Source: Chrysemys picta bellii
Lineage: Eukaryota
Length of the DNA stretch: 64,000 nt
Direction: 5' to 3'
Assembly (NCBI RefSeq): GCF_011386835.1
Contig: NC_088802.1
Coordinates: 3,658,001-3,722,000, forward strand
Positions 36,118 through 64,000 of the stretch are shown here, piece after piece. How positions within the stretch are numbered: the stretch's first letter is position 1; the number at the start of each line of letters is the position of its first letter. Under the pieces are notes generated by a model that was not told where the DNA came from, ran no database searches, and saw only the letters and a list, made by a program, of their open reading frames with translations. The position numbers and the translations under genes were made by a program.

Positions 36118-39100
36118 TTAGGGGGGGCAGCGCTGCCGGGCGGTCACCGTGTTGAAGAGCGGGTTGTGGATTTCCATCTCCCCACTCTGGGAAGGGGGGG
36201 AAGAAAGAGAGAAAGGGAGACATTAGTGAGGGCACCGTGCGAGGGGAAGAGCGCAGCGACCCAGACCCGTCCCCACAGCCCAGCGCCCCCTGCTTCCCCC
36301 GCCCCCTGTCCTCACAGCCCAGCGCCCCCTGCTGCCCCCACACTGCTCCCCACAACCCAACGCACCCTGCTGCCCCCGCCCCCATCCCCACAGCCCAGCG
36401 CCCCCTGCTTCCCCCGCCCTGCTCCCCACAGCCCAGCGCCCCCTGCTGCCCCCGCCCCCGTCCCCACAGCCCAGCGCCCCCTGCTGCTCCCACCCCGCTC
36501 CCCACAGCCCAGCGCCCCCTGCTGCCCCTGTCCCGATCCCCACAGCCCAGCGCCCCCTGCTGCCCCCGCCCCGCTCCCCACAGCCCAGCGCCCCCTGCTG
36601 CCCCCGTCCCGATCCCCACAACCCAGCGCCCCCTGCTGCCCCCGTCCTGATCCCCACAGCCCAGCGCCCCCTGCTGCCCCCGTCCTGTTCCCCACAGCCC
36701 AGCGCCCCCTGCTGACCCCGCCCCCATCCCCACAGCCCAGCGCCCCCTGCTGCCCCTGTCCCGATCCCCACAACCCAGCGCCCCCTGCTGCCCCTGCCCC
36801 TGTCCCCACAGTCCGGCGCCCCTGCTCAGCCCCCGCCCTGCACCCCCACAGCCCAGCGCCCCCTGCTGCCCCTGCCCCTGTCCCCACAGTCCGGCGCCCC
36901 TGCTCAGCCCCCGCCCTGCACCCCCACAGCCCAGCGCCCCCTACCGGTGCCAGTCCGGGACATTCGTACACAGTAAAGTCGCCGTTCTCAGTCTCTGACT
37001 CCGTCGACAGCTGCTGGACGGGCTTTGGGGGGCTCCTGGGGGAGACGGACCCAGACACGGGGTGAGGAACCGCATGAACCAGGCCGGGGGCCGCGGCCGG
37101 GGTCTAGGCCAGGGGATCCGGGGGCTGAGGCGGCTCCGCAGCTAGGGGTGGAGATCCAAGGGACCCAGGTATCCGGGTGGGAAACGGGTTGGGGGGGGCA
37201 CCTAGACCCGAGCGCCCATGTCCCATGGGCCCGGCTAGACGACGGGCGATCTCCAGTCCTCCCAGGGAGGTGTGGAAAACCGGGGGTAGGGGGAAGGGAG
37301 TAACTGTCCCCAAGACACCCCCAAAGTGGGAGGAGGGTAGAGGGGGCAGCTCATGGGGCCAGGGGCTGAAGGACGGGGGGGGGGGATTTTGGGATGCAAA
37401 ATTTCCGGGTTGGATTGTGGGGGGAAGGTCAGAGGGGGCAGGGGGCAGGGGTGACTTGGGTAGGTTTGGGTTTCAGGAAGGGGTGGATTGGGGGGAAGTG
37501 GGGGATGGGAAGGGGAAGATTCAAGGGTGAGTCTGGAGTTTGCGGGGGTCGGTTTGAGGTCATGATTTGGGGGGTGCTTTTGGGGTGGGGCAGATTTGGG
37601 GGGAGAGGAGGCTTGGGGGTGGGGTGAGGGGGCATAGGGTGGGGGAAAGGAAGGAGTGGATTCTGGGGGGCAGATTCGAGGGTCCCTTCCCTAAGCCCCT
37701 CCCCCTCCCCACCCATAACCAATGGGGTGAACGGGGGGTGGGGAGGAATGGAGGGGAACTCACTCCTCATTGGTCAGGATCTTTTTCTGGCGCTGGTACT
37801 GGTGCACCTGGCAGGACTGGGCCAGCCGGGCGTCCATGTACTGGGGGGACAGACAGACAGACGGGGAGATGGTCATTGGTCAGGTGAAACTGCCGTCCCG
37901 GATGCCTGGGTCCCATTCCCCGTCCTGGTCTCCAGCCCCCTAGGGGTGAGCACCTGCACTGCTGTCCCGGACGCCTGGGTCCCATTCCCCATCCTGGTCT
38001 CCATCCCCCTAGGGGTGAGCACCCTGCACTGCCGTCCCGGATGCCTGGGTCCCATTCCCTGTCCTGATCTCCGACCCCCTAAGGGTGAGCATGGGGGTGG
38101 GGGTCTCACCATTCCGGGCTGGTGGTATCGATAATGATTCCCCCGATACGCCGTATATGCCAACTTCTGGGCCAGACGCACCTCCCGCTGCAACCTGGGG
38201 GCACGGAGTGGGGGGGGGTCAGAGCAGCGGGTGGGGCAGTCCAGAGCTGGGCTGGCAGGTGCTGCGGGTCGGGAGTGAGGGGCACCAGCAGAGCTGGGGG
38301 GGCAGGGCTGGGCTGGCAGGGGGCTGCGGGTCGGGAGTGAGGGGCACCGGCAGAGCTGGGGGGCAGGGCTGGGCTGGCAGGGGCTGCGGGTCGGGAGTGA
38401 GGGGCACCGGCAGAGCTGGGGGGGGCAGGGCTGGGCTGGCAGGGGCTGTGAGTTGGGAGTGAGGGGCACCAGCAGAGCTGGGGGGGGCAGGGCTGGGCTA
38501 GCAGGGGCTGCGAGTTGGGAGTGAGGGGCATCGGCAGAGTTGGGGGGGCAGGGCTGGGCTAGCAGGGGGCTGCGGGTCGGGAGTGAGGGGCACCGGCAGA
38601 GCTGGGGGGGGGCAGGGCTGGGCTGGCAGGGGCTGCGGGTCGGGAGTGAGGGGCACCGGCAGAGCTGGGGGGGGGCAGGGCTGGGCTGGCAGGGGCTGCG
38701 GGTCGGTAGTGAGGGGCACCGGCAGAGCTGGGGGGGGCAGGGCTGGGCTGGCAGGGGCTGCGGGTCAGGAGTGAGGGGCACCGGCAGAGCTGGGGGGGGG
38801 CAGGGCTGGGCTGGCAGGGGCTGCGGGTCGGGAGTGAGGGGCACCGGCAGAGCTGGGGGGGGGGGGGGCAGGGCTGGGCTGGCAGGGGCTGCGAGTTGGG
38901 AGTGAGGGGCACCGGCAGAGCTGGGGGTGGGCAGGTCTGGCCTGGCAGGGGCTGCGGGTCGGGAGTGAGGGGCACCGGCAGAGTGGGGTGGGGGGCAGAG
39001 CTGGGGGGGGCAGGGGGCTGCTGTGGGGAGGTGCAGTTCCTACCTGTACCAGCAGAGGGCAGCCACCAGCAGCCCTGAGACCCCGGTCACGGAGCACATC

Positions 39101-41417
39101 AACACCAGCACTGCGGGGCGGGGGGAGGGGAGAGAAACATTAACCCCTTGAGCACTGCCCCCCCCAGCCCCTCAATGCCTCCCTGGCCCCCAGGCGCTCT
39201 GTCCCCCCTGCCCCCATTCCCGGCCCCTCCCGTTACTCACGCAGAGACACGGCCTCATTGAGCCGGGAAGCCGGGGGACGTGACTTCAGATCTTCCTCCG
39301 GCCGGGCGGGGCTGGAGCCAGGCGTCAGGGCGGAGGGGGGAGCGGTGGGGGGAGGGGGAGACGTAGGGGGGGTCTCGGTGACCGAAGGAACCTGGGGGTC
39401 AATCCCCATGGAGCCAGCTGCAAAGATAGAGAGGTTAGAGCGCCCCCTGCTGCCCCCGTCCTGCCCCCCACAGCCCAGTGCTCCCTGCTGCCCCCCGTCC
39501 TGCCCCCCACAGCCCAGCGCCACCTGCTGCCCCGTCCTGCCCCCCACAGCCCAGCGCCCCCTGCTGCCCCCCCGTCCTGCCCCCCACAGCCCAGCGCCCC
39601 CTGCTGCCCCCTGTCCTGCCCCCCACAGCCCAGCGCCCTCTGCTGCCCCCTGTCCTGCCCCCCACAGCCCAGTATCCCCTGCTGACCTCTGCCCCGCCTC
39701 CCACAGCCCAGCGACCCCTGCTGCCCCCCGTCCTGCCCCCCCACAGCCCAGCGCATCCTGCTGCCCCCCCGTCCTGCCCCCCCACAGCCCAGCGCATCCT
39801 GCTGCCCCCTATCCTCCCCCCACAGCCCAGCGCCCCCTGCTGCCCCCTGTTCTGCCCCCCACAGCCCAGCGCCCCCTGCTGCCCCCTGTTCTGCCCCCCC
39901 ACAGCCCAGCGCCCCCTGCTGCCCCCCGTCCTGCCCCCCACAGCCCAGCGACCCCTGCCCCACCCCCCACAGCCCAGTATCCCCTGCTGACCTCTGCCCC
40001 GCCCCCCACAGCCCAGCACCCCCTGCTGCCCCCTGCCCGCTCCCTACAGCCCAGCGCCCCCTGCTGAGTCCCCTGTTCCCTTCAGTCTCGACCGTGCTGG
40101 GGGGTCTCGGTCCCAGGGGTCCTGGATCCCTTCTGTTTTTTGGCCACCATGGAGCGGATGAGGGTGGCCAGGTCGCTGGGTCTAGCATCCGACTTGGCTC
40201 CATCGCCTGAGGGAGAAACACAGGGAGATGGGCAGGTGCCCCTCACTCCCGACCCGCAGCCCCTGCCAGCCCAGCCCTGCCCCCCCCAGCTCTGCCGATG
40301 CCCCTCACTCCCGACCCGCAGCCCCCTGCCAGCCCAGCCCTGCCCCCCCCCAGCTCTGCCGATGCCCCTCACTCCCGACCCGCAGCCCCCTGCCAGCCCA
40401 GCCCTGCCCCCCCCCAGCTCTGCCGGTGCCCCTCACTCCCGACCCGCAGCCCCTGCCAGCCCAGCCCTGCCCCCCCCCAGCTCTGCCGGTGCCCCTCACT
40501 CCCAACCCGCAGCCCCTGCCAGCCCAGCCCTGCCCCCCCCAGCTCTGCTGGTGCCCCTCACTCCTGACCCGCAGCCCCTGCCAGCCCAGCCCTGGGCTCC
40601 CCCCAGCCTCTGCCGGTGCCCCTCACCGTTCCTGTGCGGTGTCTCGAGGACACAGTCCCCACCCGGGTCCTCATGGTAGGGGCGGATGCAGGGGCCACAG
40701 CTCCGGATCCCCCCGGGGCCGCAGCCCTTACGCCGCTGTAGGAGACAGTTCAGCCGGATCCGCGGTGGGCAAATCGCAGCCGGGCCTACAGGGAGAGAAC
40801 CGGAGCAGCCCCCGCTTTAACCACCAGCCCCCCCCCCCCCTCCCCAGAGCCAGGAGAGAACCCAGGAGTCCTGGCTCCCAGTCCCCCCTGCTCTAACCCA
40901 CCAGCCCCACTCCCCTCCCAGAGCCAGGAGAGAGAACCCAGGAGTCCTGGCTCCCACCCACCCCCGCTCTAACCACTAGTCCCTGCTCCCCTCCCAGATG
41001 TTTCAACATCTGTCCCTGCTTCTTAAAATCATAATCTCCTGACAGCCAGAGCAAAAAAAATCAGAGGAGAAAATCTTTGGTTAAATAGTAAGAGAGATGG
41101 AAATTTGCTCCTGTTCTCCCCATGGGCAGCCCCCCCCCAGCACTGCCCCCCCCCAGCTCTGCCGGTGCCCCTCACTCCCGACCTGCAGCCCCTGCCAGCC
41201 CAGCCCTGCCGGTGCCTCTCACACCCGACCTGCAGCCTCGGGAAACTGGCAGTAGAACCCAGGAGTCCTGGCCCCCAGCCCCTCCTACTCTCCTTCACAC
41301 ACCTCCGATGCCCCTCCCCCGCCCTGTACCCCCCTTACCTGCCTCCCCCCCGGCCCCCGGGGCCAGCCCCAGCCCCAGTAGAGCAGACAGGGCCGCCAGC
41401 CAGCGCAGGGTCCGCAT
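36118..41417 (-). CDS. NPDC1-like type I membrane protein (NPDC1L), 305 aa
   Basis: Exons 41417-41339 (signal peptide MRTLRWLAALSALLGLGLAPG), 40785-40627 (CPPRIRLNCLLQRRKGCGPGGIRSCGPCIRPYHEDPGGDCV), 40206-40093, 39417-39241, 39110-39044 (TM LVLMCSVTGVSGLLVAALCWYR), 38194-38110 (LQREVRLAQK), 37840-37764, 37035-36945 (NGDFTVYECPGLAP) and 36186-36118 (SGEMEIHNPLF). 918 nt, phases consistent, NPDC1 family motifs present. Confidence 0.9.
36250..36945. repeat. CTCF-core minisatellite in the last NPDC1L intron
   Basis: ~40-bp units cccacagcccagcgccccctgctgccccc. Confidence 0.9.
38240..38995. repeat. ~61-bp minisatellite (copy 2, same orientation as 33150-34095)
   Basis: gggctgcgggtcgggagtgaggggcaccggcagagctggggg units. 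Confidence 0.92.
39430..40070. repeat. CTCF-core minisatellite in NPDC1L intron 3
   Basis: cccacagcccagcgccccctgctgccccc units. Confidence 0.9.
40230..40625. repeat. ~61-bp minisatellite (copy 3, inverted)
   Basis: gcccctcactcccgacccgcagcccctgccagcccagccctgcccccccagctctgcc is the reverse complement of the copy 1/2 unit. Confidence 0.92.
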
Positions 41418-56729: not shown

Positions 56730-59593
56730 ATGTCGGCGCGCCTGGCCCTGGTGGACTGGCTGGACGAAGGCTTCTCCAGCATCATCGAGCTGGCGGCGGT
56801 GAGGGAGCCACGCCGGGACCCTGCCCGCTACCGGCCGGGCCAAGAGGTGGCGGCCCGGTGCCCCCTCTTCAAGGGGCTGAACCGCGCCCGCATCCTGGCC
56901 CTCAGCCGTGAGTGAGCGAGCGCCCCCCTGCTCCGACTACCCCCCCTTGTCCGAACACACCCCTGTCCGTCCGTCCCCCCCACACCTCTCCATCTGTCCC
57001 TCCCTCCATCCGTCCCCCTACACCTCTCCGTCCATCCCCCCTGTACCCCTTGTCCGTCCCCCCCACTTCTCCGTCCCTCCCTCCTGCCATCCATCCCCCC
57101 AAACTCCCTGTTCATCCCCCCCACACCTCTCTGTCTGTCCCTCCCTCCATCCGTCCCCCCAAACCCCTGTCCGTCCCCACAACACCTCTCCGTCCCTCCA
57201 TCCCTCCCCCCATACCCTCCGTCCATCCCTCCATCCTCTCTTCTCTCTCCGCAGGGGACAGGCAGAAGTTGAAATGGATCCAAGTCCGGGCTGGGGGCTG
57301 TCCCGGGAGCAGCTGGGGGGGCAGGACGCTGCGGGGCCCCCCCTACCACCAAGTGGCGACATGGAGACGGGACAGAGTGCCCCCTGAGAGAAGGAAACAC
57401 AGCACAGGTGGGTGCTGCTCCCCGTGCCGGACACCTCGGTCCCGTACCCCATCCCGGTCTCCAGCCCCCTAGGGGTGAGCACTGCGCTGCTGTCCTGGAC
57501 GCCTGGGTCCCATTCCTCATCCTGGTCTCCAGCCCCCTAGGGTGAGCGCTGCACTGCCGTTCCGGATGCCTGGGTCCCATTCCCCTAGAGACCAAGAAGT
57601 CTCATTCAGTGACTGTTTCTTGTCTCATTCCAGGAGGCAACACCGATGACGTCACCACCTCCGTGCTCGACCCTGAAGGGACGCAGGTGTCCGAGGATGA
57701 GGGCCGGGCGACCCCCCAGAGCACCTCATCCTCGGAAACCTGGCATTCCTCCTCCCCCGACTGCCCCCACGTGGACAGCTCTGGCTGCGGGGTTCCCTGC
57801 TCCCCTGGCCCTGCGGAACCAGGCGTCCGGGCGGGGCCGACCGAGCCCTGCGCCAGGCCGGAGTGCGAGAGGATGCGACAGGAGCTGGAGGCGCTGAGGG
57901 ACCGATACGCCAAGCTGGAGGCTCAGAACGCTGTGCTGTCCCAGAGACTCGGTGAGCCCGGACGCCTGGGTCCTCGGGGACGAGGGTGGGGTCTCGTGGG
58001 TCAGAGCAGGGGGGCGGGACTGGGAGCCTGGACATCTGGGTCCTCTGAGAGGAGAGTCAGGTCTGGTGGGTCAGAGCAGGGGGGTGGGGTTGGGAGCCCG
58101 GACGCCTGGGTCCTCTGGGAGGGGAGTGAGTGGGGTCTGGTGGGTCAGAGCAGGGGGCCAAGGTTGGGAACCCGGATGCCTGGGTTCTCAGGCGCGTGGG
58201 AGCAAGTGGTCACTCCTGTCTCCGTTCTCTGCAGGGGGCGATGTGGAGCTGCCCAGGGAGGTGGACAGCAGTTCCGTGCGGCCGGAGCCCGGGCTCTATC
58301 AGGACCCTGCACTACCTCAGAAACATGGGGTGAGCTGTGGGGCGGGGAGTGGGTCGGGGGATAGTGGGAGGCCTGGGGTCCCTCTTATAACAATGTCTCC
58401 TCCCCCTCCTCCTTCCATCCCCCTCCTGTCCCCTGCCTGCTCCCCCTACTGCCCCTCCTCTCTCCACGCCCCCTACTGCCCCCACCCCACTTTCCTCTGT
58501 GCCCCCCTCCCCGCCCCCCAGATGCAGGAGCTGGTGCCAGGAGGGGGCGTGTTCCTCTACCCCGCCCAGCTGGCCCTGGCCCGCTCCAGCGCCCGCAGCC
58601 AGACGGCCCTGGCCCGGCTCCTGCTCGACGTCTTCTTCTCCCGCCAGGAGCAGGCACGGAGCAACCTGTCCGGGGAGAACGGGCTACGCCGCCTCAGCCC
58701 CCCCGTCGTCAGCGCCATCGTGGGTGAGTCCGGGGGGGTCAGGCGATGGTATGGCCCTGGGGGGCGGGGACAGGCAATAGTATGGACTAGGAGGGGCAAT
58801 GATGGTATGGCCTGGGAGGGCGGGGCCAGGCAGTAGTACGGACTGAGAGGGGCAATGATGGTATGGCCCGAGGGGGCGGGGACAGGTAGTAGTATGGACT
58901 GAGAGGGGCAATGATGGTATGGCCCGAGGGGGCGGGGACAGGTAGTAGTATGGACTGGGAGGGGCAATGATGGTACGGCCCGGGGTGGGGAGGCAGGAAG
59001 TACTGCGGACTGGGCAGGGTCCTGATGATATGGCCCAGGGATCAGGGTCAGGCAATGGTATGGCCCCAGTGGGTGGGGTCAGGCAGTAGTATGGCCTGGG
59101 GGGCCAATGATGGTATGGCCTAGGGCAGGATGATGGTATGGCCCAGCAGTGTGTTTCAGACAATTGTATGGCCTCCGTGGGGGAGGTCGCGGTGATGGTA
59201 CGGCTCAGGTTGGGCTAGGCAGTGATACTGCCTGGAGGGTTAATGATGGCACAGCCCAGGGAGTGCAAGGCGATGGTACGGCCTGTGGGCGTTAATGGTG
59301 GTATGGCCTGGGTTGGGGGTGAGGTAATGGTGCAGCCCAGGAGGGCAAGGCAATAATTTGGCCCGGGGCAGGAGCAGTTATAATGGACTGGTCTATCGTA
59401 AAGGAATTCCGTGGGGGGGATCCTGCTGCCATTCACCCCTCTTTTCTCTCCCCCCGCAGCCTACGCCGTGGGTCAGTCCCAGTTCCAGCCCAGCAGTGCT
59501 GCCGTCATCAAGAACTCGCTGCGCAACAAGCTGGGCTGCCTGAGAGCCCCGTCCCGCCAGCAGGGGGCCACCAGGGGGCGCACTGCGGCCTGA
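56730..59593 (+). CDS. Unidentified BEN-domain protein, 359 aa (BEND5-like architecture)
   Basis: Exons 56730-56907 ([19 protein letters not shown]...RARILALS), 57255-57407, 57634-57951 (coiled coil [26 protein letters not shown]), 58235-58329, 58522-58723 ([15 protein letters not shown]...[35 protein letters not shown]) and 59460-59593 (AYA...IKNSLRNKL). All GT-AG and phase-consistent (1080 nt). Confidence 0.85.
58740..59400. repeat. Degenerate intronic tandem repeat (atggtatggccc core)
   Basis: Recurring gatggtatggcc...gggcggggacagg.agtagtatggact units. Confidence 0.8.
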
Positions 59594-61215
59594 GAGCCCC
59601 GTCCCGCCAGCAGGGGGCCACCAGGGGGCACCCCGCAGCCTCAGAGCCCCGTCCCGCCAGCAGGGGGCCAGCAGGGGGCGCCCCGCGGCCTGAGAGCCCC
59701 GTCCCGCCAGCAGGGGGCCACCAGGGGGCGCCCCGCGGCCTGAGAGCCCCGTCCCGCGGCCTGAGAGCCCCGTCCCGCCAGCAGGGGGCCACCAGGGGGC
59801 GTCCCGCGGCCTGAGAGCACCGTCCCGCCAGCAGGGGGCCACCAGGGGGCGTCCCGCGGCCTGAGAGCCCCGTCCCGCCAGCAGGGGGCCACCAGGGGGC
59901 GCCCCGTGGCCTGAGAGCCCCGTCCCGCCAGCAGGGGGCCACCAGGGGGCGCCCCGCGGCCTGAGAGCCCCGTCCCGCGGCCTGAGAGCCCCGTCCTGCC
60001 AGCAGGGGGCCACCAGGGGGCGCCCCGCGGCCTGAAAGCCCCGCCCCACGGCCTGAGAGCCCCGTCCCACCAGCAGGGGGCCACCAGGGGGCGCCCCGCA
60101 GCCTGAGAGCCCCGTCCCGCCAGCAGGGGGCCACCAGGGGGCGGCCTGAGAGCCCCGTCCCGCGGCCTGAGAGCCCTGTCCCGCCAGCAGGGGGCACCAG
60201 GGGGCGTCCCGCGGCCTGAGAGCCCCGTCCCGCCAGCAGGGGGCCACCAGGGGGCGCCCCGTGGCCTGAGAGCCCCGTCCCGCCAGCAGGGGGCCACCAG
60301 GGGGCGCCCCGTGGCCTGAGCGCCCCGTCCCGCGGCCTGAGAGCCCTGTCCCGCCACCAGGGGGCCACCAGGGGGCGTCCCGCGGCCTGAGAGCACCGTC
60401 CCGCCAGCAGGGGGCCACCAGGGGGCGTCCCGCGGCCTGAGAGCCCCGTCCCGCCAGCAGGGGGCCACCAGGGGGCGCCCCGTGGCCTGAGAGCCCCGTC
60501 CCGCCAGCAGGGGGCCACCAGGGGGCGCCCCGCGGCCTGAGAGCCCCGTCCCGCGGCCTGAGAGCCCCGTCCTGCCAGCAGGGGGCCACCAGGGGGCGCC
60601 CCGCGGCCTGAAAGCCCCGCCCCACGGCCTGAGAGCCCCGTCCCACCAGCAGGGGGCCACCAGGGGGCGCCCCGCAGCCTGAGAGCCCCGTCCCGCCAGC
60701 AGGGGGCCACCAGGGGGCGGCCTGAGAGCCCCGTCCCGCGGCCTGAGAGCCCTGTCCCGCCAGCAGGGGGCACCAGGGGGCGTCCCGCGGCCTGAGAGCC
60801 CCGTCCCGCCAGCAGGGGGCCACCAGGGGGCGCCCCGTGGCCTGAGAGCCCCGTCCCGCCAGCAGGGGGCCACCAGGGGGCGCCCCGTGGCCTGAGCGCC
60901 CCGTCCCGCGGCCTGAGAGCCCTGTCCCGCCACCAGGGGGCCACCAGGGGGCGTCCCGCGGCCTGAGAGCTCCGTCCCGCCAGCAGGGGGCCACCAGGGG
61001 GCGTCCCGCGGCCTGAGAGCTCCGTCCCGCCAGCAGGGGGCCACCAGGGGGCGCCCTGCAGACTGAGAGCCCATCCCACCAGCAGGGGGCGCCCCGCGGC
61101 CTGAGAGCCCCGTCCCGCCAGCAGGGGGCGCCCTGCAGCTGAGAGCCTGTCCCCGTGGCAAGGGGCCACCAGGGGAACCCCGTGGCCTGAGGGCCTGTCC
61201 CACCAGCAGGGGGCC
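59548..61215. repeat. ~50-bp CTCF-motif minisatellite with a 576-bp higher-order duplication
   Basis: Unit gcctgagagccccgtcccgccagcagggggccaccagggggcgccccgcg. Variant landmarks recur exactly 576 bp apart (59811/60387 and 60032/60608). Confidence 0.95.
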
Positions 61216-63352
61216 ATGCCACGGCCTGACACCTGGCATTCTCCCAGCAGGGGTGCCCCGGAGAGCTGTGAATGGGGCGTGATTCTGATCTCAATACAGA
61301 AGGTTTTTTGACACCTCTGAGTCCCTGGCTCTTTATCTGTGGGAGGGACTCAGGACTCCTGGGTCCTCTTCTGGCTCTGGGAGGGGAGTGGGGCCTAGTG
61401 GTTAGAGCAGGGGAGACCGGGGGGGGGGGGGCTGGGAGCCAGGACTCTTGGGTCTTGGCTCTGTGAAATTTCCCACTCCAAAGAGGACCCCGAGGAAATG
61501 ATCTGAAAGCGCTGAGGTGACAGTTTACGCGGGGGGGGACGGGACTGAGCACCTAACTCCCCCCCACTCACACACCCACCCCTCCTGTTCTAGCCGGGGA
61601 TGGGGCAGGACCCTGATCTCAGGAGTCCGGGCCAATCCCAGCCTGAATAATTCTCCCCGACTTCCAACGCCCTCTGAAGTTCAATAGAAATTCGCCTGCC
61701 CATGCTGGGCTGGATCTCCTGCCCCACCCCCCATTTCTCCTGCCCCACCCCTCTGGCACCCCCAATCCCTTCCCTATAGCGCCAATCACGATACACTGAG
61801 CTGCAGTGACTCACTCCCGCCACCAGGAGACGCTCCCCAGTGCCTTCCCTCTCTATGGCCTTTTCCTGCTGTAGGGAGCGTGGCTCGGCCTCTCTCTCCA
61901 CCGGCCCGTAGCGCTCTATGGCTCTCCAAGTGCCGGTCGTGTGGCTGAGGACCCCAGCTGGGGCTGGCTCGGCAGGTGCCTGGCCAGAAATAGCCCGCTC
62001 CCCGGCTGAGCTAGTGCGGAGCGGGGCTGGGGGCGTCCCCGGGGACTGGGGGTGACCCGGGCAGCGCGGGCCGGGGGGCGGGGAGCAGCTGTCGCGAGGG
62101 GCGCTGGGATCAGGCGGCGCCGCGGGCAGCCCGGGGCGGGTCCTGCAGCCGGGGATCGCCAAAGGCGGAGACACGTGGGGCCGGGAGCAGCTGCCGGGAG
62201 AGCAGGTACCGGGGGGGGGGGCTGGTGCCTCCTGCCCCTCCGCCCCATAACCACCTTGGCCCCGCCCCCACAGCCCCCTCCTGCCCCATCAACCCCGCCT
62301 CCCAGCACCATCCTCCCCTGCCCCATAGATCTCCCGGTCCTAGTCCCTCCCCTGCCCCACAGCCCCTCCGTCATCACCTCCTGCCCCGTAGCCCCCCAGC
62401 ACTGACACCTCCTGCCCCATAGACCCTCCCAGCCCCCAACCTTCCCGTCCTAATCCCCACAACCACCCCCTGCCCCACAGGCCCCCACAGTACCGCCTGC
62501 CCTTCAGCTTCCCAGCCCTGACACCCCCGGCCCCATAGATCTCCCAGTCCCCCACCTCCCCGCCCTAGCCCCCTCGCCCACACACTACGCCAGTTCCCCG
62601 CCCTACAGCACTTCCATCATCACCTCTGCCTCACAGCCCTCCATCTCCCCATCCTAGTCCCCCTAGGGCTGCGGCCCCCTGCCCCCTTCCCTACCCCCCA
62701 GCCGCTCTGTCATCATCCCTGTCCCACAGCACGCAGCCCTGACACCCCCCACCCCCATAGAACCTCCCTGGCCTAACAACCCCTTCCTCCTGCCCCCCTC
62801 CTGCCCCCCTCAAATGATCCTGACGGTACCACTCCCCCCCCAGTTGCATCCCCCCGTCCTCAGTTCATACCCCCATCTGCCCCCCTCTGAGCTGCCTGGG
62901 GTTCATCCTGTGATGGGTGGGGGGTGGGGCTGGTACCTAGGGCCATGGGCTGGGGCTGGGGGGTTGCTTGGATCGCCCCCCCCCTACCGCCAGTGATAGC
63001 TCCCTTGGCCCCGCCCCAGGGAGAGGTTTCTCGGAGGCGGGTCCTGGCACTGGGATTGCATCAGCCCAGCCGGTGTCAGAGCCCAGCACCGGGGCAGGTG
63101 GGAGCAGCTAGAGGGGACAGGCCTCTGCCCCGTTCCCTGCCCCCCGAGCCAGCCGGTCCCTGCCCTGGGGCAGATGGGAGCTGGCGCCCCCTGCAGGGGA
63201 CAGGCCCCTGTCCCATTCCCCACCCCCTGAGGCAGCCGGTCCCTGCCCTGGGGCAGATGGGAGCTGGCGCCCCCTGCAGGGGACAGGCCCCTTGTCTCAC
63301 CAACTGTGTCTCTCCGTCCCCAGGTGTGTCTTCGGGGTGCTCAGCCCTCGCC

Positions 63353-64000
63353 ATGCCCACCCTGTACCTCTCCCCGCACCCGGACAATTTCCAGAACCAG
63401 CGGGTGCTGATCGCAGCCCGCTATGCCCCCACGCTGCCCGAGGTGGTGGAGCTGCCGGAGCAGGGGCTCCCCCTGCGGCCCCCTGCCTCCTGCCCCCTGC
63501 CCAAGCTGCCGGCGTTGGAGAGCCGGCCGGGGGTCTGGGTCTCGGGCCCGGCCGCCGTGGCTCAGCTCCTGTGCCCGGAGCGGCTGAGGGGGCAGGGGCC
63601 AGCGGGGGGCGCTCTGGTGCAGCAGTGGGTGAGCTACGCTGACGGGGAGATCGCCCCTGCTGCCTGTGCAGCCGCCTTCTCCGCCCTGGGTCTGGCGGAG
63701 CAGAGCAAGCAGGTGAGACCTCCCGGACTCCTGGGTTCTCGGGGAGGGGAGTGGGATCTAGTGGTTGGGGGGGGGGAGCTAGGACTCCTGGGTTCTTAGG
63801 GAGGGGAGTGGGGTCTAGTGGTTAGAGCGGGGGCTGGGGAGGGGGAGCTAGGACTCCTGGGTTCTCGGGGAGGGGAGTGGGATCTAGTGGTTGGGGGGAG
63901 GAGCCAGGACTCCTGGGTCCCCTGTCTGTTGCAGTACCCTGGCGTCTCTCTCTCTGCCTTCCCAGGTGGTGGAGCGGGCAGTGGCAGAGCTGCGCCGGGC
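63353..64000 (+). CDS. VARS1: Valyl-tRNA synthetase, cytoplasmic (N-terminal GST-like domain; continues beyond the window)
   Basis: Exon 63353-63712 (MPTLYLSPHPD...LIAARY...AVAQLL...LVQQWVSYAD.EI.PAAC) matches the mammalian VARS1 N-terminus; next exon from 63966 (VVERAVAELRRA). A non-coding exon probably ends at 62205. Confidence 0.95.

Follow-up and report, generated by a model that had tools for sequence, protein, structure and literature searches.

Genes and features at the locus

The locus lies within a 64-kb window of Chrysemys picta (painted turtle), by which we mean the whole stretch of DNA that was analyzed; coordinates are those of the window, and all features given below are on its + strand. 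It comprises the end of a BEN-like gene (LOC112061174), a long minisatellite, and the upstream region of VARS1. The BEN-like gene has its final coding exon at 59460-59593, following an acceptor AG at 59458-59459, and its translation is identical to the C-terminus of the database protein P0003, which was used in place of a full gene model, with no exons joined. This exon aligns without gaps to the sequences of six turtles and to a salamander mRNA.

P0003 has a coiled coil and, after it, a BEN-like domain at the C-terminus. Its likeness to BEN-domain proteins (BANP and the BEND family) lies in residues 261-339, which can be aligned with the BEN domain of solved BANP structures (7yuk, 8yzt, 7yug), but the match is weak (PDB E of 0.009, or ~0.01 across these chains), and against Pfam BEN (PF10523) the protein scores 16.5 bits, or 17.1 bits for the exon alone, under the gathering cut-off of 23.2. 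The proposal in the initial annotation that the repeat array is tied to a possible insulator-type protein is speculation. Turtles, salamanders, and coelacanth are the only groups in which the gene was found, and the coelacanth version has a BTB domain and zinc fingers added.

Past the minisatellite, only one hexamer close by resembles a poly(A) signal, an AATACA (61293-61298) with a T run after it; this is a candidate for the mRNA 3' end and would put the poly(A) site near 61310-61325. The hexamer lies 68 bp beyond the array in Chrysemys and 68-86 bp beyond it in five of seven turtle loci; neither AATAAA nor ATTAAA was found within the array or nearby. Further downstream, a block at 61796-62238 (CpG observed/expected [o/e] 0.59) is conserved in blastn comparisons with Emydura, Natator, and Dermochelys, and is probably the promoter of VARS1 together with its non-coding first exon; the start of the coding sequence of this gene maps to 63353. 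The array had been described as ending ~500 bp before the VARS1 promoter region, and the measured distance to this candidate block is ~570 bp.

Structure of the minisatellite

Tandem repeats make up 25% of the window, in 64 arrays, and the minisatellite at the tail of the BEN-like gene is the longest of them. It spans 1.69 kb (59538-61225) and, according to TRF and a unit list, contains 40 head-to-tail units of 21-50 bp: 23 of 50 bp, nine short units of 21 bp, and eight others of 38-49 bp. The tandem array reported in the initial annotation is thus real, with 40 units rather than ~30. GC content is 81% and CpG o/e is 0.53. The last unit (61187-61225), an old variant ending in ...GGGGGCCATGCCACGGC, closes the array in other turtles as well, and the CTGACAC directly beyond it (61226-61232) is, judging from Natator and from salamander mRNA, the ancestral stop context, left stranded at the far end.

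The interior holds a higher-order block of 576 bp, or 14 units, that is present twice (59761-60336 and 60337-60912) with 574 of 576 positions identical (99.7%). The second copy may have been duplicated very recently or may stem from the assembly. Near-identical higher-order blocks are the commonest place for assembler errors; four other assemblies, however, made independently and free of N runs here, have arrays of 0.55-1.3 kb at this position, and two positions do differ between the blocks. We thus consider it very unlikely that part of the array, for example this duplication, is an artefact.

Unit 1 is translated and unit 2 supplies the stop codon

Unit 1 (59540-59589; 17 residues) is the translated unit, its first 18 bases being the ancient codons for LRAPSR. 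It supplies the last 17 residues of the BEN-like protein, and the founding unit is made up of the final 16 codons of the gene plus the stop. The initial annotation had recognized the C-terminus of the protein as the first repeat unit, and this is borne out, the stop being a TGA (59591-59593) within the CTGAGAG that opens unit 2. A 50-base variant identical to unit 1 sits inside the array of Malaclemys (locus L008, 10720-10769). Several units read in frame would characterize a coding VNTR; here, translation ends where unit 2 begins.

The suggestion that gain or loss of units could alter the C-terminus is mostly unsupported. A first unit of 50 or 38 bp always brings the TGA of the next unit into frame, and, Dermochelys excepted, all species examined have a tail of 19 residues beyond RNKL, with equal length at 1, 3, 11, 19, 30, and 40 units. 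A one-residue difference in Chrysemys (RPAA to RTAA) seems to be the only change that array turnover has made to the tail there, and a read-through appears in the otherwise degraded Dermochelys copy.

Copy number varies widely among turtles

Orthologous DNA of eight other taxa was compared, and copy number was taken, between species, from nine turtle assemblies. The number of units per species is one in Natator, two in Dermochelys, and three in Emydura, followed by 11, 19, 25, 30, and, in Chrysemys, 40, with the two Gopherus arrays at 25-30. Array length correspondingly ranges from 50 bp (Natator) through ~76 (Dermochelys), 141 (Emydura), 554 (Pangshura), 742 (Malaclemys), 1200 (G. flavomarginatus), and 1332 bp (G. 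evgoodei) to 1686 bp in Chrysemys. Comparison of C-terminus and array length in other turtles, the check proposed at the outset, thus returned 1-40 units beside a tail of constant length in all but Dermochelys. The order LSM2, BEN-like gene, VARS1 is kept at the loci whose flanking genes were fetched. Even the two Gopherus arrays share only 82% identity and differ by unit-sized indels. The array has both the tandem units and the between-genome differences in copy number that define a minisatellite or VNTR.

The terminal variant unit is also last in Malaclemys, Pangshura, and both Gopherus, and in slightly changed form in Emydura. Because this common variant closes arrays that include that of Emydura, the array had at least two to three units before the crown turtle split.

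Origin of the repeat from the coding end

Whether a coding or 3' segment was amplified into a minisatellite, or a repeat invaded and supplied the protein tail, had been left as alternatives in the initial annotation. In turtles as in three salamanders and Latimeria, the BEN-like domain ends in GCLRAPSR, of which the opening 18 bases of the unit encode LRAPSR. Salamander mRNA runs without gaps through the tail, with the TGA in the same column and in the context CCTGAC. In Natator, a single unit is flanked on either side by GCCTGA, and the TGA of CTGACAC directly after the unit is the working stop. Because LRAPSR is ancient and the salamander stop stands in the same column, we conclude that the repeat was born in place from the coding end, as the first of the two options held.

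The competing view, that a pre-existing dispersed repeat with CTCF motifs inserted at the end of the gene and gave it a new tail, can point to the 11 residues after LRAPSR, which lack clear similarity to the salamander tail (13 of 34 bases match, a level like chance). It has to contend with a unit that starts with ancient codons, with the gap-free alignment to the salamander stop, and with the clean single-copy state in Natator. Further, the non-core part of the unit does not occur in the 64-kb window outside this locus, and the LRAPSR-coding 18-mer has no second occurrence there. Insertion is already largely refuted and can be given almost no credence; its rejection follows from the LRAPSR codons shared with salamander and coelacanth. 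The initial annotation had also held that its reading would fall if the array were unbound or methylated with no boundary and orthologs ended with the same tail and no repeat; the second half of this applies to Natator, in which the tail is the same and the repeat is lacking. Homology of the 11-residue tail to that of salamanders was itself considered and set aside: at 13 of 34 bases, only the equal length and the shared stop column favor it.

We therefore regard the array as probably a GC-rich minisatellite, variable between lineages, that was formed on the spot when the final 50 coding bases of the BEN-like gene were duplicated in tandem. The process would have begun with a 50-base segment between GCCTGA direct repeats, where slippage or unequal exchange between the copies could duplicate the segment. 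Both 50 and 38 leave a remainder of 2 on division by 3, so the duplicated Leu-Arg codons CTG-AGA would be read as C-TGA in unit 2, placing a stop exactly where the ancestral one stood; protein length is independent of copy number because the unit-2 TGA restores the stop there. From at least two to three units before the crown turtle split, the array would have stayed short or shrunk in side-necked and sea turtles, with growth and continuing turnover in pond turtles, geoemydids, and tortoises, that of the painted turtle being the largest and youngest. The CTCF-like cores would be no more than the QQGATRGR codons, copied each time the unit was. Most likely the array sits in the 3' UTR without a conserved function of its own.

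CTCF-like cores within the units

The published CTCF consensus CCASYAGRKGGCRS, as quoted in PMC6746451, was used to search the window. The array contains 23 strict matches, every one of them on the + strand, and the whole window contains 31 against 0.28 expected; a 12-base core occurs 55 times in the array, again always on the + strand. Two CTCF-like cores had been reported for most units. The second, CCACCAGGGGGCGC, is a perfect match to the consensus, and the first, CCAGCAGGGGGCCA, misses it at the last two positions; the nine 21-bp units carry neither. The start of the second is 12 bases from that of the first and the two have 2 bases in common, so only one CTCF could occupy a unit at a time. 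Because all are copies of one ancestral unit, the 23 matches amount to no more than one or two independent occurrences. Three further minisatellites within the same 64 kb also have dense CTCF-like cores.

Strict cores by species number 23, 8, 4, 9, 5, 2, 1, and 1, and the other long arrays have only 4-9 compared with 23 in Chrysemys. At least one strict core is retained here in every turtle examined; the one common site lies within coding sequence. A conserved single CTCF site may thus exist at this spot, constraint on the coding sequence and on the site being confounded in unit 1, and its eight core codons show 0 synonymous changes among seven turtles against ~1.5 expected, too few sites to mean anything.

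Methylation blocks CTCF at cores that contain CpG. Among unit variants, about half of the changes are CpG transitions (32/61, 21/42, and 100/183), and CpG o/e, at 0.53 in the Chrysemys array, is 0.24-0.41 in those of other species, with 0.24-0.36 in the older arrays. The excess of CpG transitions and the low CpG o/e suggest past methylation in the germline. Unmethylated copies could well bind CTCF, though the data do not require it.

Boundary and RNA-level readings of the array

The initial annotation saw a boundary element in the array. Such a role is unsupported, given that neither the length of the array nor its number of cores is conserved and that cores decay by CpG transition: the units match the CTCF core consensus, as those of an insulator array would, but only one site is conserved among relatives. 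It is still conceivable, if unlikely, that the expanded array is a working, lineage-specific directional CTCF barrier, which would stand between the BEN-like gene and the VARS1 promoter or serve as an anchor for loops that extend downstream. The numerous cores on one strand, the end of the array just upstream of the conserved probable VARS1 promoter block, and the precedents of DXZ4/Dxz4 (PMC3491370) and the HRNR VNTR (a conjectured gain of CTCF sites; PMC10234305) point in this direction, as does the enrichment of cores in the minisatellites of the window, where they are ~4-8 times commoner in the units than in non-repeat sequence (2 strict cores vs. 0.24 expected, and 6 vs. 1.5 at no more than one mismatch, comparisons that are not GC-matched). 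However, uniform orientation follows automatically from tandem duplication, nine units are coreless, and overlapping cores admit a single CTCF per unit. No particular array can be needed where 1-40 copies are found under the same gene order; in older arrays the cores have decayed (5-9 strict in the 25-30 units of Gopherus), and the CpG signals point to germline methylation.

Bolder, and less probable again, is the idea that turtles repeatedly convert single CTCF sites into minisatellites, so that the 23-55 same-direction sites here are a newborn one-way barrier before the VARS1 promoter. If true, it would provide a dated, stepwise example (1, 3, 11, 19, 30, and 40 units) of an insulator born from coding sequence. 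A literature search on CTCF repeats in turtles found nothing relevant.

Alternatively, the array might act on RNA or transcription, either as a long GC-rich 3' UTR that lowers expression of the BEN-like gene or by slowing polymerase, which could shield the VARS1 promoter from read-through. The first candidate signal, AATACA, lies beyond the array, which is thus probably transcribed, and all three genes run in the same direction; array length, however, is not conserved, and two units as a single strand fold no more stably than shuffled sequence (z = 0.29). We think there is little chance that this is the case. A function driven by hairpins was dropped on that same folding result.

Relation to known systems and significance

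With 1-30 copies and the same protein tail in other turtles, the array looks like an ordinary unstable repeat. It shares with GC-rich vertebrate minisatellites and VNTRs the head-to-tail units of tens of bases, the high GC content, the variant units and higher-order blocks, the young, homogeneous interior set between old, diverged edges, and the wide differences in copy number between close relatives. Unlike ordinary minisatellites, its founder is the last codons of a gene plus the stop, and only unit 1 is translated, because unit length and boundary hold the stop in place. DXZ4/Dxz4 and FIRRE are CTCF-bound tandem repeats, macrosatellites of kilobase units for which binding and a folding role have been shown experimentally (PMC3491370). 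The turtle array resembles them in its many same-orientation CTCF motifs and in the fast change of sequence and copy number between species, and differs in its 50-base unit, in its CTCF sites, which are predicted ones, and in its indirect signs of methylation. In the human HRNR coding VNTR, expansion multiplies predicted CTCF sites, with a conjectured effect on folding (PMC10234305). There, too, the repeat is linked to coding sequence and predicted sites grow with expansion, but HRNR is translated throughout and its protein changes in length, whereas turtle translation ends after one unit.

The locus provides a clean case of a minisatellite that started inside coding sequence without harm to the protein, which is spared because unit boundary and length recreate the stop at its old position. 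Turtles also offer, at a single orthologous position, a natural series of 1-40 predicted CTCF sites, in which it would be convenient to study whether the number of motifs alters chromatin insulation.

The coding end of the BEN-like gene

The last exon of the BEN-like gene spans 59460-59593, and its frame closes with a TGA at 59591-59593. The first unit of the adjoining minisatellite (59540-59589) is translated, and the stop TGA sits within the CTGAGAG that starts unit 2, so the proposal in the initial annotation that the C-terminus is itself the first repeat unit holds. Exons were searched one by one, with none joined; to find full-length relatives, the mechanical ORF 57952-58833, which has no interruption, served as a length carrier while the BEN exon alone was scored. 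This search returned Chrysemys picta bellii LOC112061174 isoform X1 (database protein P0003, 359 aa), which is identical in sequence to the exons and tail in the window. The Pfam BEN score, 16.5 bits, falls below the 23.2 cut-off, and residues 261-339 of P0003 match the solved BANP BEN domain with E about 0.01; we regard the BEN assignment as weak and “BEN-like” as the fitting name.

Isoforms of 317 aa without the first BEN exon are annotated in four turtle species (P0014, P0015, P0017, P0018). A second, partial painted-turtle copy with a frameshifted BEN exon (P0019, LOC135980683) lies on an unplaced 2214-bp contig and may be a haplotig or assembly fragment. Mauremys mutica has two annotated loci for the gene (P0021, P0022, P0028, P0029) and, on another contig, its 60-residue N-terminal exon fused to an unrelated protein. 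In the Latimeria homologue (P0020), a BTB domain and C2H2 fingers precede the BEN-like domain, and turtles and salamanders (P0008-P0010) have in common an N-terminal exon unlike that of Latimeria. Word-based searches returned no match to a bird, mammal, lizard, or crocodilian homologue. The last intron holds a minisatellite with a 56-bp unit (GATGGTATGGCC...; 58745-59040), which is old, since Natator has it in the same position (locus L002, 9000-9139).

Structure and surroundings of the array

A dense tandem array occupies 59538-61153, and TRF extends it through degenerate units to 61225. The array reported initially is thus real, but its count of roughly 30 units was too low, as cutting the sequence at each CTGAGAG gives 40. 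Full units of 50 bp number 23 (a typical example is 59911-59960); nine are 21 bp long, lack the 29 bases that hold both CTCF-like cores, and look like products of slippage between a unit's two internal CCCGC stretches; the remainder measure 43, 49, or 38 bp (two each) and 48 or 39 bp (one each). A 576-bp higher-order block occurs twice, units 6-19 matching units 20-33 at 574/576 positions. Tandem repeats, in 64 arrays, make up a quarter of the window, and this array is the longest, the runner-up measuring 952 bp. The unit contains no minus-strand stop, which leaves all three frames of that strand open through the array (59393-61552; mechanical ORFs of 719, 574, and 532 aa); we rejected these as genes and treat them as repeat artefacts.

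Neither AATAAA nor ATTAAA occurs within or near the array. The sole candidate poly(A) signal, an AATACA at 61293-61298, precedes a T run, and in five of seven turtle loci it lies 68-86 bp past the end of the array; with the only candidate lying beyond it, the whole array is probably 3' UTR. Relative to the other turtles, Natator has about 250 bp extra in its 3' flank, an AATAAA included (L002, about 9830-10030), probably an insertion. About 570 bp separate the array end from a block (61796-62238; CpG o/e 0.59) that is conserved out to Emydura and probably comprises the promoter of VARS1 with its first, non-coding exon; VARS1 coding starts at 63353.

Origin of the repeat unit

Two origins had been offered initially: amplification of a coding segment, or invasion by a repeat that supplied the tail. 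GCLRAPSR ends the BEN-like domain in every turtle, as it does in three salamander proteins and the Latimeria homologue, and a salamander mRNA contig (L006) aligns without gaps to the turtle last exon as far as a TGA at the matching column. Hence the unit's first 18 bases (CTG AGA GCC CCG TCC CGC) are ancient codons. Within the window, the 18-mer coding for LRAPSR is confined to this locus, and the invasion reading was rejected on these grounds. Natator presents the single-copy state, one 50-base unit with GCCTGA on either side, and then a CTGACAC, in which the TGA serves as the stop; salamander has CCTGAC at that position, and species with arrays have CTGACAC at the far end (61226-61232 in Chrysemys). 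That the repeat was born in place from the coding end of the gene is well supported by these comparisons. Most simply, slippage or unequal exchange between the two GCCTGA copies would have duplicated the unit.

Variation among turtles

Gene order (LSM2, BEN-like gene, VARS1) is kept in every locus reaching far enough. The array measures 50 bp in Natator (1 unit, 1 strict core, that is, a full match to the CTCF consensus), about 76 bp in Dermochelys (2 units, 1 core), 141 bp in Emydura (3 units, 2 cores), 554 bp in Pangshura (about 11 units, 4 cores), 742 bp in Malaclemys (about 19 units, 8 cores), 1200 bp in Gopherus flavomarginatus (about 25 units, 5 cores), 1332 bp in G. evgoodei (about 30 units, 9 cores), and 1686 bp in Chrysemys (40 units, 23 cores). 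A distinctive terminal unit (...GGGGGCCATGCCACRGC) is common to Chrysemys, Malaclemys, Pangshura, and both Gopherus, and slightly altered in Emydura, so a short array is older than the split between side-necked and hidden-necked turtles. The single unit of Natator is probably a contraction; here an orthologue ends in the same tail without any repeat, an outcome that the initial annotation had named as counting against its reading. Interior turnover is fast, the two Gopherus arrays being 82% identical with indels of unit size.

Units of 50 and 38 bases leave a remainder of 2 when divided by 3, so unit 1 is read CTG-AGA-... and the next C-TGA; 21-base units stay in frame. By this arithmetic, in-register gain or loss of units keeps the tail length, as the observed tails bear out, and the earlier suggestion that such events could alter the C-terminus is largely wrong, holding only for a Pro-to-Thr change in Chrysemys. 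After RNKL, the common 19-residue tail is found in Emydura, Mauremys, Pangshura, and Malaclemys; the ending is ...GASRGRPAA in Natator, Lepidochelys, and Chelonia, ...GTTRGRPAA in G. evgoodei, and ...GATRGRTAA in Chrysemys. The Chrysemys substitution most likely arose when the first few units were lost in register, because its unit 1 (a two-base CACTG variant) equals an interior Malaclemys unit at 50/50 bases (L008, 10720-10769). The Dermochelys model (P0011) continues through a first unit of 37 bases into flanking sequence (L001, 6834-7010), and the BEN exon there is frameshifted; this copy seems to be either degraded, possibly a pseudogene, or mis-assembled, with assembly indels.

CTCF-like motifs and CpG decay

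The array holds 23 matches, every one on the + strand, to CCASYAGRKGGCRS, the consensus given for genome-wide human CTCF sites (PMC6746451). The window as a whole has 31 matches, where shuffles predict 0.28, although those of the array all derive from one unit and statistically count as one or two events. The two same-strand cores per unit described initially stood in part: the second, CCACCAGGGGGCGC, is a perfect match, but the first, CCAGCAGGGGGCCA, departs from the consensus at its last two positions, and nine units have no cores. The 12-base core occurs 55 times in the array, and within a unit the core starts lie 12 bases apart with a two-base overlap. CTCF contacts roughly 15 bases at its core, so one CTCF at a time is predicted per unit.

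Among random non-repeat segments of repeat-unit size from the window, 0.4% hold a strict core and 2.3% a core with at most one mismatch. Measured against this control, which is not GC-matched, unit consensuses hold a strict core in 2 of 64 arrays (0.24 expected) and a core at up to one mismatch in 6 of 64 (1.5 expected). Dense same-strand cores with at most one mismatch occur in three further minisatellites: 8001-8418 (+; 49-bp unit, about 9 copies), which appears intronic and has strict or near-strict cores (CACCAGGGGGCGCTG), four of them strict, and the related pair 36266-36942 and 39439-40066 (both -; 38-39-bp units), with 13 and 8 one-mismatch CTCF-like cores, respectively. Along the window, core orientation in the arrays at 8, 36, 39, and 59.5 kb runs forward, reverse, reverse, forward. 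Reading every such array as a boundary, at a spacing of about 10-20 kb, is implausible. We found no literature on CTCF-motif repeats in turtles.

About half of the unit variants are CpG transitions (Chrysemys, 32/61; Pangshura, 21/42; G. evgoodei, 100/183), where an even spread predicts about 7%; the counts are of cells and do not represent independent events. Array CpG o/e is 0.53 in Chrysemys (GC 81%), 0.41 in Malaclemys, 0.36 in Pangshura, and 0.24 in each of the two Gopherus. Germline CpG methylation usually leaves such an excess together with low CpG o/e, and the pattern indirectly suggests it here, for the germline only. The decay reaches into the cores (GGCGC becoming GGCAC or GGTGC), and CTCF binding is impeded where such CpGs are methylated.

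Known parallels

A CTCF site at the array, predicted from its motifs, is possible; a role as a boundary element is unsupported. Like DXZ4/Dxz4, a CTCF-bound macrosatellite (PMC3491370), this is a tandem repeat with CTCF motifs, but those of the macrosatellite are bound, whereas those of the painted-turtle array are predicted sites. It likewise resembles the coding VNTR of human HRNR, for which a gain of CTCF sites on expansion has been conjectured (PMC10234305), as a coding-linked VNTR multiplying sites that are, here, predicted ones. We see the array as a neatly explained case of a known kind of element.
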